In this document: positions 32,162-37,600 of the stretch, piece after piece
Position numbering within the stretch: position 1 is the first letter of the stretch
How the letters are laid out: each line of letters starts with the position of its first letter
Assembly (NCBI GenBank): GCA_907165135.1
Contig: OU015569.1
Location: 1,116,001 to 1,180,000 of the forward strand
Source: Oikopleura dioica
Taxonomy: Eukaryota; Animalia; Chordata
DNA: 64,000 bases
Direction: 5' to 3'
Notes under the pieces: model-generated
Database searches by the model: none
What the model saw: only the letters and a program-made list of their open reading frames with translations
What the model was told of the DNA's origin: nothing
Made by a program: the position numbers and the translations under genes

Positions 32162-32854
32162 ATGGGTCGAAGATCCCGATCACGGTCTCGCGATCGCGAC
32201 AGGGACAGAAAACGTAAAAAACACAAGAAACGCTCAAGGTCTCGTTCAAGAGAGCGCAAGCGTGAACGGAAAGAGCGTCGCCGCGATAGAAGGTTCACAT
32301 TTTCTTCTTTTTGCTTGTTTTAACACCCATTTCAATAGATCAAGAACACGATCTCGAAGTCCAGTAAAATCAAAGAAATCGGAAGCAATCGTCATTCGAA
32401 GCCGCTCTAACTCGCCCGATGTTCAAATTATGAAAACAGAGAAGGCCCCGGTTCAAGACTCTTCTGCGGATCTTGGCGCGTATGCAAAACTGTTCTCCAA
32501 GTCAAAAGTATGCATTGCCAACCATTCCTCCCTTTATTGCCTTTTAGGAACTTGAAGAAGAACGAAAACGGATGAAGGAAGCGTCGGAAAGAGTTCTGAG
32601 TGAAAAAGAAGCCCTTCTTGCTCCTTTATCAAATGAGAAGTCGGAAGAAGAAATGATGGCTGAGATGATGGGCTTCTCAAACTTTGATACCACTCAGAAT
32701 AAAGGTTTTCTACAAACAGCTAGAGCCAAAAGTTTACCATTTCCTAGGGCATGAGGACAACGACGTAGGAGAGAGCCGCTGCATCAAACAGCGAAAGTAC
32801 CGACAATATATGAACAGGAGGGGCGGCTTCAATCGTCCGCTTGACTCTATGTAA
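32162..32854 (+). CDS. SNRNP27: U4/U6.U5 tri-snRNP 27 kDa protein
   Basis: RS-rich N-terminus; EEEMMAEMMGFSNFDTTQNK; C-terminal RKYRQYMNRRGGFNRPLD. Confidence 0.94.
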
Positions 32855-32972
32855 CCTTTGATAGAATAATTTTTCAATAATCCTGCCGACAATTTGCGTA
32901 TTTTGACTTTTTTCCTCTTTTCCAACTGACCTTTTGATCCTCTGATCTAAATTTAACAAGCGTATTTAGAAA

Positions 32973-33803
32973 ATGGGACTCTTTGGCTTCTTGAAAGGGA
33001 AGAAAAAGTCTTCCGAAGGGTCTGCCGACTATCCGAGGCAAGACGGAGGATATCCACAACAGCAGCAGCAGCAGTTTCAGCAGCCACCGCAAGAGCAGTT
33101 CGGCCAACCGCAAGGCTATCCTCAGCCAGGCTACGCTCCAGAAGGTTACGCTCAACAGGGATACCCTCAACAAGGCTATCCGCCTCAAGGCCATCCAGAA
33201 CATCAAGGATACCCTCAAGATCCTGGATTTCCTCAGCAACAGTTCCAGGGATATCCTCCACATGAAGAACACCGTCAAATCGACAATGTAGACCGAAATG
33301 ATTCGGGTAAACATGTCACCGTATCATTCTATATACATTTGTCGTATTACGTATGAAAAAAGAGCCCTCCGTACATATATTGTCATAGCTTGTCAGTACC
33401 AATTCAAGCCAGACGAAGAGACATATCGATGTCTTGACTGCGAGATAACTGAAGACTGCCCTGTTCTCTGCCGAAACTGTTTTGAAGGTAACGAAAGCGC
33501 ATATTTTCATGCATCCATTTAATAATTAAGCTTCGGAGCACAAGAACCATCGATGGGAAATGCTCCGAGACGAGGGTGGCGGATGGTGCGATTGTGGAGA
33601 CGGAACTGCTTGGCGTCAGCCTTTCGTTTTCTGTCAGTTCCACGCTCCCAAATACGAACAGCCTCAGCAAGATCCTGGTATGCCTTACCCAGTTGCCGGT
33701 GGAGACGTCGGTTACAAGTAAGCCTCGAGCGTCTTTGTACCAATTATCGACTTTTTCAAGCGCATCATACGGAAACCCACCACCATATGGCCAACAATAT
33801 TGA
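32973..33803 (+). CDS. Stand-alone UBR-box (zf-UBR) protein, ~220 aa, with GYPQ repeats and PPxY
   Basis: Exons 32973-33306, 33389-33487, 33531-33717, 33761-33803 (all GT-AG, in phase) give [70 protein letters not shown], a full UBR-box Cys/His pattern. Confidence 0.85.
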
Positions 33804-34067
33804 ACTCCCACAGAAAATCAACACCGTCGATTCAACAACGACTAACCCCTCTTTTCTTCATCTTACTTGTATGCCGTGTTTAACTCTCATTTCTTAACGA
33901 CCGTTGCTAAACTAACCGTGCTTCTCCGATTGTAAATGTCCTTTCCTATTTCTTCAATTTGAATCCGAACGAAACTGTATTAAGCCTGTATACATTTCAA
34001 CTCGTTTCTTTTCCAGGAACTCATTTTATCGAATTCAACTCACTCGTGTTCTTTTAGAAATTGTGCA

Positions 34068-34478
34068 ATGCCGATTCTTGGCGACTTTGCGAAAGCTACG
34101 TTGAAGGCGGCAGTTGTACAAGCGGAAAATCGAAATCGGTTATTGGAGGAAGACTCCTGCTGGCGAGAACGCGAGAAAGAAAAAGATCCGAATCGCCCGA
34201 AAAATCGCTTCAAATTGGAAAAGGTCCGTCATCATTACTAAATAACCTTTGACGACAGATATTATTTCCAGGAAAGTCCAGAAAAGAGACGAAAGCGAAA
34301 ACAAGTTCTGCCAGCAAAAGAGATCGGCCCTGATCTGCCACCCGACCGCTACCGGTTCTTCAAAGCTCCTCCGAAAAAGAACGAAGAAGAAAAAGCATCG
34401 AGCGCCGAGAAACAAGGCACCAAAAAGTCCCGTAGTCGTTCAAGATCTCCCGTAAGAAGAAAGTCCCGCGAGAAATGA
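34068..34478 (+). CDS. Small basic RS-tailed, probably nuclear, protein (uncharacterised)
   Basis: Two exons (intron 34224-34271): MPILGDFAKATLKAAVVQAENRNRLLEEDSCWREREK...IGPDLPP...KSRSRSRSPVRRKSREK*. Confidence 0.7.
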
Positions 34479-34648
34479 GCGACGGGTGCATATTCTTTTT
34501 ATTATCTTTTGCTGCCGAAAAGACACGCGTCTGTTATTTGTTTAGTCCTGAAAAATTTGACACTGAAACTCTGAAAGAATTCAGACAATATATTTGCATA
34601 CTTCAGCATGCTCATAACGAGGTAGTCAAAAACAAAAAAAAAGCAATC

Positions 34649-37600
34649 ATGGACGATCAAGATTCGGACGTTTGCCGAGTATGCCGAATGGAAGGCACAG
34701 GTAATTTGAAATCGGCTGCTTCGTACTTCCTTATCTATTTCAATTTTTCAGCCAAGCGCGCTCTCTTCCATCCATGCCACTGCTCAGGCTCGATTCGCTT
34801 CGTTCATCAAGAATGTCTTGTCGAATGGCTCCGTGTATCCAAAAAGGATTTCTGCGAGTTATGCAATCACAAGTTCGCGTTCAAGCCGATTTACTCGGCC
34901 GACATGCCCGCTAGAATACCCATCTCCGAGTTCATTACCGGCCTGATTCGTTCCCTCCTTCGTGCTATCGGCTGTTGGCTTCATTACACGGCCGTTGCTC
35001 TTGCCTGGCTTGGTTTCGTTCCGCTTCTAACTTGCCGTATATTCTACTGGTGAGAGGTCGCATCATTTAGTTTCTTAATCGGCTCTTTTAGTTTATTTTC
35101 TTCGTCTACTTCGTTCTACAAACTTGCAATGGAGCCACTTTTTTCCACAGAGTACTTTATGCGCGACATTGTCACCGGTGGCTTTATCGTTGGCTGCACC
35201 ATGGGTAAACCTATCGAACCTCGAAGGTTCACTATGCTTCTTTTTCAGGCATTTTTGTGTGTTTGCTCTATCTTCGGGAGCAATTCATCCAAGGCGCATT
35301 TCAAAACATGCTGCAGAACAACGCAGAAGAAGCGGTTAATATTCAGCAGCAGATGATAAACGATATTCTCGCGGCTGAAGATCACTGGAACCTTGAAGAA
35401 GAGATCATGGGTCCGATTCACGAAGGAATGCAGCGGCTCGAAGAACTTGCAGAGGAGCAAGCAGCGCTTGAAGACCGAATTGAAAATCCTCTGGAGGCCA
35501 TGCTTCAAGAAAATCTTGAGCAAGAAAGAGCCGCTCGAGAAGAGCTTGTTCGTGCTCAAAGGGAGCTCGACGCTCTACAACGCCGGATAGGCAACTTTCC
35601 AGCTCAAGAAGATGATGAAGTCATCTTTAACGAGGTAGATTTTGGGTTTCAAGAACAAAATGTTTTGGTGAAAAAAGAGAGGTCCTACCGAGATTTGAAC
35701 TCGGATCGCTGGATTCAGAGTCCAGAGTGCTAACCGTTACACCATAAGACCGCTGAGGGTAACTCAACTCAAACTCTTTATATTGCCTTTTGTTTCATAC
35801 TGATTCAAGCCTTCCAAACTAAAGCGAATCTTTTAGGCTGAAAATGTTGAGCCAGCTGAACAATGGAATCTGGAAGAGCTGACTTGGGAGCGTATGCTCG
35901 GCTTGGATGGCTCCTTCGTCTTCTTGGAGCATGTTTTTTGGGTTGTTTCGCTCAACACACTCTTCATTTTCGTCTTCGCGTACACACCCTATCATGTCGG
36001 AAAAAGCATTTACACCACATTGCACATTCTCTCGGTTGTTGAGTCTTCTCAGCTTGCTGGTGGCTTGTTTACACTCACAGGTACAGTGGCATCGAGTACT
36101 CGTCTAAATTTAATGGTAACTTTATTCGCTAGGCTACGTTTTCTTCGCGTTTATTTTCCTGATGTTCCACCTCATTTCCTCGAAGATGAACATGGAGAAG
36201 CTCAGTAACCTGGCGAAAATCTGCTACATGTGTATCAAAGTAGGAATTCTACTCGTTGTCTGTATGATTATCATGCCTATCATATGTGGCTGGTGGATCG
36301 ACATTTGTTCCCTTTCAATGCTCAATGCTACACTTTCGGATCGACTCGGTAAGATCAAAAAGATAGCTTCGAACCTAACCAAAAAACTTGAAGTTTCTTA
36401 TCGAGCATCTCCGGGAGCATCGTTTGGATTCCACTGGCTCTTTGGTGCGTTGTTTATCTTCTACTTTGGGACTTTTCTGATCTTCACGAAGGAAGTGCTT
36501 CGCCCTGGACTTCTCTGGTTCATGCCAAACTTGAACGAGCCGGACTTCAGTCCGATCAGGAGATTGATGAATCAACGCCTCGTCCATCATCTACGGTAAC
36601 TTTCGATTTTCGATGCATCGTAAAAGTTACTTTCTTTTAGCCGTTTCCTCGTTTACATCGCTGTCTTTGGATTGTCAATTTTGTTCATCATCGCCGTTCC
36701 TGTTAAATTCATCAAATGGGCAGTACCTGATTTTCTCCCCTATCGTGTTTTCGCGATTTCGGACGAGCCACTAAATCATGTATCTCTTGAGCTCGTCACT
36801 CTTCAAGTTTTCCTTCCTACCTTGCTCGAGCAAACTCATATCAAGGTAACGAAAGGGACGTAAAGTCAAACTAACGCCTTCAGTTTTTCTTGAAGTCTCT
36901 GATTCGTCTTTGGGCTGAGCTTGTCGGCTGGGCTCTTGGCTTGAGAGGATATCTACTTGGAGAGCGGCTCGCGGATAGTAATGAAGGAGACCAAAGAAAT
37001 CAGCCTGGCTTCCTACGTGGCGCGGTTGAGAACGACGAAGACGGACAAAATCAAGAGCAAGACGAGGATATTTTCTGGAACCCGGAACATATCAACGATG
37101 ACCGAAATGAAATCCGAACTCATCATCTTTTTCAAAAGCCATCCCGCTTCCGCGGCCGAGTTGGCGTACTCTTGTTTGTCGTTGCTATTTCAATCTCGTC
37201 CTGTGCTGCTTCTGCAATTTACTTTCCAGTGTTGATGGGTAGGAAGATTTTAGCGTACACTGTTGGCCACAAACGCAGGGTGCACGAAATGTATACGGTT
37301 GGTAGCTTCGATTTTATCTCTGAAATTGACATTTTTAAATAGCTCTTTCTCGGACTGTTCGTTTGCTGGCTGCCTCTGCTTGGCATCACGATCGTCTCAC
37401 GATGGGCTCCGAAGGGATGGAAGTTCATGGCGAAGAACCTCGCTCGATCTATCAAAATCGCCGTAAAAATTTCAACAGCATTCGTTCTCGTTGCTGGAGT
37501 AACTGCTCTCCTGATGGGCCTTCTCTTCGACTACGCAATATTAACGCCTCTGCGAGTGCAACAGTACCAAACACCTATAAGTATGAATTCAAGTTTCGAA

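Follow-up and report, generated by a model that had tools for sequence, protein, structure and literature searches.

The locus and its transcripts

Between positions 32973 and 33803 on the + strand of the window (i.e. the whole stretch of 64,000 nucleotides of Oikopleura dioica DNA that was analysed) lies a gene of four exons that encodes a small protein with a single UBR box. The spliced coding sequence is 663 nt long, giving 220 amino acids followed by a stop codon. The product is letter-for-letter identical to an annotated protein (CAG5094445.1, Oidioi.mRNA.OKI2018_I69.XSR.g13563.t1; termed P0001 here) from the X-specific region of the Okinawa O. dioica assembly, to which UniRef gives the automatic name 'E3 ubiquitin-protein ligase'. 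The coordinates and splice model of the initial annotation, which was made from the sequence alone, are correct. The features of the locus are collected in Table 1.

Table 1. Features of the UBR-box gene and its immediate surroundings, in window coordinates.
Feature	Position	Strand	Basis
SNRNP27, last exon and stop (upstream operon gene)	32753..32854	+	Pfam SNRNP27, E 8e-15
Trans-splice acceptor AG (32968-32969) and 3-nt 5′ UTR 'aaa' before ATG	32968..32972	+	sister-lineage cDNAs L004-L006
Exon 1: residues 1-111 and base 1 of codon 112	32973..33306	+	splice model
N-terminal start peptide (12 residues), exon 1	32973-33008	+	
Q/P/G/Y-rich region, predicted disordered, exon 1	about 33030-33272	+	pLDDT 44-59; 78% Q/P/G/Y
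Intron 1, 82 nt, GT..AG	33307..33388	+	Norwegian homologue (L001 6344-6432) absent from cDNA L002
Exon 2: first half of UBR box (C113, C126, C129, C139, C142, loop EITEDCP)	33389..33487	+	zf-UBR E 2e-5
Intron 2, 43 nt, GT..AG, lineage-specific, predicted	33488..33530	+	colinearity with Norwegian gene after removal
Exon 3: second half of UBR box (H148, H151, W163, C164, D165, C166, D168, C179, H182) and Pro-rich linker	33531..33717	+	zf-UBR E 1.5e-7; PDB alignments to UBR1/UBR2
End of UBR box, within exon 3	33643	+	
Intron 3, 43 nt, GT..AG	33718..33760	+	Norwegian homologue (L001 6719-6760) absent from cDNA L002
Exon 4: C-terminal micro-exon, PPPY (33777-33788) and TGA stop	33761..33803	+	
3′ UTR and intercistronic spacer, up to ATG of next operon gene (34068)	33804..34067	+	

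Intron 2 has no counterpart in the Norwegian gene (L001), where exons 2 and 3 are fused. Its retention would lead to a stop codon and its exact excision makes the sequence colinear with the Norwegian gene again, so it is predicted to be a lineage-specific intron. In three other lineages (L010, L012 and L015) an intron lies inside the Cys-loop of the box instead of at this position, and that of L012 appears to have GA-AG ends. Intron turnover is high within one small gene.

Expression was judged from orthologous cDNA contigs of sister lineages. One of these (L002, JGI 3300032617) matches the Norwegian genomic sequence exactly, minus the introns, and runs from the 3′ part of the spliced leader (SL) through the spliced SNRNP27 frame and a spacer of 101 nt into an uninterrupted UBR-box frame of 223 codons. 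In three Logan contigs from independent runs (L004-L006) the 3′ end of the SL (...GATTGTCTAACAG; the O. dioica leader sequence is printed in PMC6883708) is joined directly to AAA-ATG-GG, and is followed by a frame of 227 codons and a 3′ UTR of ~220 nt. Poly(A) is found about 220 nt past the stop codon in L005 and L006, and L004 continues into the ATG of the next gene. The window carries the matching acceptor arrangement, tatttag/aaaATGGG, where the slash marks the junction.

As seen in these sister-lineage cDNAs, the UBR-box gene makes its own SL-capped, polyadenylated mRNA, and it is the second gene of an operon, following SNRNP27; the read-through transcripts L002 and L004 cross the first two operon junctions. 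The mature mRNAs that extend from SL to poly(A) encode just 223-227 amino acids, and the gene is therefore not the beginning of a longer one for a ligase. The proposal of a stand-alone protein had been made on the understanding that cDNA might reveal a set of 5′ exons of a longer UBR ligase, or an unexpressed fragment. It survives that comparison, and this is almost certainly a real stand-alone UBR-box protein.

The order of genes in the window is SNRNP27, UBR box, small ORF(s) and RINGv/MARCHF6 (32753-35053), the last being identified from positions 34775-35053 together with the orthologous Norwegian locus. The same order from SNRNP27 to MARCHF6 is found in L001 (5165-11048) and in a more distant lineage (L010, 54-3819; L011, 106-3829). 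We note that it is kept although these genomes are otherwise scrambled. The operon gene that directly follows (34068-34455) starts MPILGDFAK..., is rich in Lys, Arg and Glu, encodes about 113 amino acids in L001, and has no match in Pfam.

The UBR box and its pocket

A search against the Pfam family zf-UBR (PF02207) had been proposed as a check of the domain. The whole protein matches it with E = 9.3e-18, above the curated threshold (64.5 bits, cut-off 25.2), aligning residues 112-182 with profile positions 1-69. The two halves of the box match separately, exon 2 covering profile positions 2-32 and exon 3 positions 35-69. All 11 zinc ligands are present, comprising eight cysteine (C113, C126, C129, C139, C142, C164, C166 and C179) and three histidine residues (H148, H151 and H182). 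C113 aligns with C99 of UBR1/2, and the series runs to the last ligand, H166 in UBR2. A histidine as the last zinc ligand marks the UBR1-3 subfamily, while the boxes of subfamily 2 (UBR4-7) have cysteine there (PMC10687169). With H182 in this position the box of P0001 belongs to subfamily 1, i.e. the UBR1/2/3 type. In the PDB the sequence comes closest to the boxes of human UBR1 and UBR2 (E 1e-18 to 1e-16, about 46-51% identity over ~72 residues), with plant PRT6, yeast Ubr1 and FBXO11 far behind. The description of the domain as a UBR1/2-like box that keeps every zinc ligand is thus borne out.

An AlphaFold2 model of P0001, built on an alignment of 68 rows, is confident for residues 111-185 only (block pLDDT 88-96), with values of 44-64 in the flanks. 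The top Foldseek matches of this segment are again the human UBR1 and UBR2 boxes (TM 0.88-0.94, rmsd 0.9-1.7 Å). A Pfam search with the whole protein finds zf-UBR alone, with no RING, HECT, F-box or other family. Both analyses agree with the earlier view that the box is the only folded domain and that no ligase domain accompanies it. None of the features of the large ligases (a length of about 1,700-2,000 amino acids, a ClpS-like N-domain and a RING) is found in this protein of 220 residues, in which the remainder is disordered. Feature search of the ESM Atlas returned generic zf-UBR clusters only, with a score of 0.78.

In comparison with the human UBR1 and UBR2 boxes of known structure (PDB 3NY1, 3NY2/3NY3 and 5TDA-5TDD), P0001 has the same ligand set and predicted fold, and also the same pair of pocket aspartates. 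In UBR2, D150 contacts the α-amino group of the bound N-terminus and D153 confers selectivity for Arg, with the D153A substitution abolishing binding. The equivalents in P0001 are D165 and D168, within the sequence WCDCGD at residues 163-168, and both are nearly invariant in the 68-row alignment. However, P0001 lacks the ClpS-like N-domain, the RING and the other roughly 1,600 residues of these proteins, and the box itself differs from theirs in the D118/T120 loop, at Phe148, and before the last Cys.

These departures were scored by aligning the family against 54 canonical UBR boxes. Between the third and fourth Cys, family members have a loop with one residue more than any of the 54; its pattern is C-E-[ILA]-T-[DE]-D-[CT]-P-V-L-C in the family compared with C-x-x-D-x-T-C-V-L-C in the canonical boxes. 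The part equivalent to D118/T120 reads T-E-D-C-P in P0001 and T-D-D-T-P in the orthologs, so that acidic residues are present in an uncertain register. HMMER places the gap after the non-ligand Cys, while an equally good placement brings D-D-T (E-D-C in O. dioica) into register with the canonical D-x-T. The initial annotation described the D118-equivalent loop as altered to ITEDCP; the loop does differ, and is better described as a one-residue insertion in which two acidic residues are kept. The position of Phe148 is occupied by Trp in all members of the family (W163 in P0001), so of the pocket equivalents listed there D150 and D153 are retained and F148 is replaced. In addition, D-E precedes GGG in the family (DEGGGW) where canonical boxes have S-x (S-x-GGG-F/Y), two residues past CDCGD Thr takes the place of Glu or Asp, and one extra residue precedes the last Cys. 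Since the loop is longer by one residue and Phe148 has become Trp, the specificity for ligand may have shifted.

Relatives and flanking sequences

A comparison of the coding sequences of four O. dioica-like lineages gives the box a dN/dS of about 0.02-0.03 (pN 0.03-0.05, pS 0.58-0.71), with synonymous sites near saturation. The repeat region (pS about 0.8) has accumulated indels and substitutions while keeping its composition, and the first ~25 and last 12 residues of the protein are nearly fixed among O. dioica-like sequences.

Used as query in an exhaustive, profile-free search, the box matched 1302 proteins at E ≤ 1e-3, among which the close matches (>70% identity) beyond O. dioica were marine metagenome or metatranscriptome fragments only. 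Word-based searches contributed P0171-P0176, and P0187 and P0188 came from a look-up of clusters; none of the members found by these two routes lies outside the larvacean-like group. At least six further lineages, probably appendicularian, were read from contigs of Tara data. The MERC transcripts start with the translated full SL (T-H-P-I-F-E-S-D-F-D-C-L-T) and would therefore come from Oikopleura-like animals. The family is apparently restricted to larvaceans. In the literature searched on UBR boxes in Oikopleura or tunicates, or with PPxY, NEDD4 or myristoylation, the protein is not described. Many shorter matches (200-340 amino acids, 40-50% identity) were rejected as stand-alone proteins, being N-terminal fragments of canonical UBR1/2/3 that are recognised by the conserved helices before and after the box. 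A protein of 73 residues that shares the first 31 (P0004) was likewise rejected as a paralog or isoform, as its tail is not encoded in the window. The Tara metagenome scaffold L008 (730 nt; gene at 368-589) equals the window at about 32600-33070 up to a CAG run, beyond which it has an unrelated coding sequence rich in Q, M and P that is absent from the window. The scaffold was most likely assembled as a chimera at the low-complexity repeat, and is the source of the spurious P0004.

The architecture noted in the window was sought in other lineages, and is shared by the at least six probably appendicularian ones in the form of an MG and basic start, GYP(P)Q repeats and a C-terminal YGxPPPY. The starts have MG followed by Ser-rich and then Lys-rich sequence (MGSSSSKKK, MGSNGSKGK, MGGTSSKGK and MGANSSKK), after which comes a common motif G/S-YP-[KR]-Q-[DE]. 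Depending on the lineage, the repeats lie N-terminal or C-terminal to the box. Directly before the box is a second common motif, D-[ND]-V-x-R-x-[DH]-S-A-C. In P0001 YP-[KR]-Q-[DE] occupies residues 20-24 (window 33030-33044), right after the basic N-terminal patch, and the second motif residues 103-112 (33279-33306). Both are found at the same positions in L010, L012, L015, P0171 and P0175, and neither has a known role. A caspase-like site ahead of the box (DNVD/R), which would expose an N-terminal Arg, was considered and dropped because some orthologs have VTR or VGR.

A possible N-myristoylation start had been suggested for the window's protein, and here the orthologs and O. dioica part company. 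The criterion was PROSITE PS00008, i.e. G-{EDRKHPFYW}-x(2)-[STAGCN]-{P} after removal of Met. The pattern, with following Lys residues, is present in all non-dioica orthologs tested by script (P0171, P0172/L010 and P0174), and the MGxxxSK starts of L012, L015, P0175 and P0185 fit it on reading. In the P0171 lineage the MGxxxSK start comes immediately after the SL. By contrast, P0001 and all O. dioica-like lineages (MGLF[GS]FL) do not match the pattern because they have Phe at position 6; their start is instead hydrophobic-plus-basic, LFxFLKG(G)KKK. Anchoring to membranes may be kept in O. dioica by other means, but P0001 itself is not predicted to be myristoylated. We note that in L010 (691-706) a second in-frame ATG directly precedes the MGSSSSKKK start (ATGATGGGA). 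The context of the first ATG is weak and that of the second strong; were the first used, the N-terminal Gly required for myristoylation would be lost.

Residues 20-100 of P0001 are 78% Q, P, G or Y and include six GYP units. A likeness to annexin A7 and other ligands of ALG-2 had been drawn, and this is compositional only. ALG-2 binds type-1 (PXYPX4YP) and type-2 (PXPGF) motifs (PMC3397542), and both are absent from P0001. They occur sporadically in the orthologs, as PQPGF in P0003, P0011 and P0014 and as PGYPPQQGYP in L014.

The C-terminal PPxY motif (NPPPY) fares better. PPPY is formed by residues 213-216, in a tail that AlphaFold2 predicts to be disordered, and is kept in every lineage with a readable last exon. 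The micro-exon ends YG-x-PPPY-[GA] followed by 1-4 residues across lineages, and YGxPPPY is C-terminal in L010, L012, L014, L015 and all O. dioica-like lineages. The absence of the tail from P0171 is due solely to the transcript being cut. A longer cluster member (P0187) reaches QPPQNPA[FY], which in L012 and L014 lies ahead of the PY motif. Judged by presence and conservation of the motif, PPPY is the best supported of the three claims made for the flanking sequences.

A putative reader of N-termini with a borrowed ligase

To our knowledge every characterised UBR1/2-type box sits within a giant E3 ligase. P0001 places a known domain in a new architecture and is encoded by a real, well-constrained gene. 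It is probably not a ligase itself but a reader of protein N-termini that makes use of a separate ligase. Its closest functional parallels may lie in two groups of proteins. NDFIP1/2 and the ARRDC/ART proteins are small PPxY adaptors with a client- or membrane-binding part, which bring a WW-domain HECT ligase to clients that have no PY motif. P0001 resembles them in pairing a conserved C-terminal PPPY with a start that looks like a membrane anchor, but it has no transmembrane helices or arrestin fold, and its client-binding module would be the UBR box. The combination of UBR box and PY adaptor was not found in the literature searched. ClpS and the ZZ domain of p62/SQSTM1 are N-degron readers that are not ligases, and that hand their clients to a separate degradation machine. 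ClpS differs from P0001 in fold and delivers to ClpAP; the p62 ZZ is a different zinc domain that serves autophagy, with no homology beyond the treble-clef likeness of UBR and ZZ. Other short UBR-box proteins lacking RING and HECT are known, namely UBR7 and S. pombe Mlo2, but theirs are Cys-type boxes of subfamily 2 accompanied by a PHD finger, whereas the P0001 box is His-type and has no second domain. D129 of p62 ZZ has been compared with UBR D153 (PMC10687169).

In the model that we favour, the N-terminus would hold P0001 and its orthologs at membranes, on the cytosolic side, by a myristoyl-plus-basic signal in most lineages and by the hydrophobic-plus-basic LFxFLKGKKK in O. dioica. The box would capture free basic N-termini (type-1, i.e. 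Arg, Lys or His), and the conserved PPPY would recruit a NEDD4-family HECT ligase with WW domains to ubiquitylate the client so bound. On this view P0001 would act in trans as an N-recognin adaptor, resembling ClpS or NDFIP/ARRDC rather than UBR1. Taking the steps individually, it is somewhat more likely than not that the box still binds type-1 N-termini, the odds of association with membranes are similar, and recruitment of a ligase through the PY motif seems slightly favoured. For the whole chain, as read from sequence, we estimate a probability of about 0.4. Of the features on which a putative adaptor or decoy role was originally put forward, the stand-alone UBR1/2-type box, the lack of a ligase domain and the conserved PPPY are supported, but a myristoylation consensus in O. 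dioica itself and a likeness to ALG-2 ligands beyond composition are not.

The lack of a ligase domain and the retained aspartates of the pocket could also be read in another way, with the box shielding or sequestering type-1 N-termini at membranes in competition with canonical N-recognins. PPPY would then act on P0001 alone, in its turnover or its sorting, for instance into multivesicular bodies or vesicles in a NEDD4-dependent manner. PY motifs are common in NEDD4 substrates and not just in adaptors, and a membrane anchor combined with PPPY would recall the late-domain proteins of budding. The strongly conserved box and PY motif fit a decoy as well as an adaptor, and nothing computational separates the two models; we consider the decoy unlikely.

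The changes within the box raise the further question of whether its ligand is a classical N-degron at all. All family members have them and none of the 54 canonical boxes does, the UBR4 box provides an instance of ligands being recognised differently (PMC10687169), and the conserved YP[KR]Q[DE] and D[ND]VxRx[DH]SAC motifs are additions of no known role. The protein could thus be a scaffold in membranes or trafficking, with the box as its general module for binding peptides. Yet the equivalents of D150 and D153 are invariant, D-D-T (E-D-C in O. dioica) falls in the register of the canonical D-x-T in the alternative alignment, and the model superposes on the UBR1/2 boxes at about 1 Å. Such repurposing appears rather improbable.

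A third possibility is that the protein is the N-degron-reading subunit of the ER ligase MARCHF6/Doa10 encoded in the same operon, the two being co-transcribed and acting jointly at the ER membrane. The gene order is kept in the window, in the Norwegian locus and in the more distant L010/L011, and transcript L004 reads through towards the next gene. However, operons of O. dioica often join unrelated genes, no interaction motif is known, and the conserved PPPY points to WW-domain ligases instead; we regard this as very unlikely. Finally, it is scarcely credible that a canonical UBR1/2 ligase gene is represented here by a remnant in decay or by a 5′ end annotated in error, a reading prompted by the position of the box ~110 residues from the N-terminus as in UBR1/2, by the automatic UniRef name and by the many short database matches that are N-terminal fragments of long UBR ligases, and already contradicted by SL-capped polyadenylated mRNAs that stop after 223-227 codons, a stop codon and last micro-exon conserved across lineages, the low dN/dS of the box and an unrelated gene downstream.

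Returning to the adaptor, a more general proposal is that larvaceans have split the Arg/N-degron recognin, with a ligase-less UBR1/2-type box, anchored by a lipid or by hydrophobic residues, that reads basic N-termini at membranes and passes clients to a NEDD4-type HECT ligase via the conserved C-terminal PPPY. We put this forward tentatively, as it is on balance doubtful. If true, P0001 would be a eukaryotic analogue of ClpS, the first UBR-box protein in such an adaptor role. Such a split recognin might compensate for a reduced set of canonical UBR ligases in compact genomes, and might be functionally coupled to the MARCHF6 of the same operon. A natural protein of 220 residues that retains just the box, under strong purifying selection and with a conserved anchor-like start and PY motif, suggests that the reading of N-degrons is separable from the ligase and can be plugged into another ubiquitin system. 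It would offer a minimal natural N-degron reader for biochemistry and engineering (targeted degradation and N-terminome probes), and a test case for the rewiring of proteolysis in compact genomes. If instead the specificity of the box has changed, the range of ligands for UBR1/2-type boxes would be wider.

Unusual arrangements of UBR-like boxes were also encountered elsewhere. Proteins of Mucoromycota have up to seven UBR-box-like stretches (P0021/P0169 from Haplosporangium, 1838-1879 amino acids; P0022/P0170 from Funneliformis, 448-459 amino acids), and P0023 and P0016 are also among the proteins with several such repeats. P0024 (516 amino acids, Logan) combines a RING and a coiled-coil with two UBR-like boxes.
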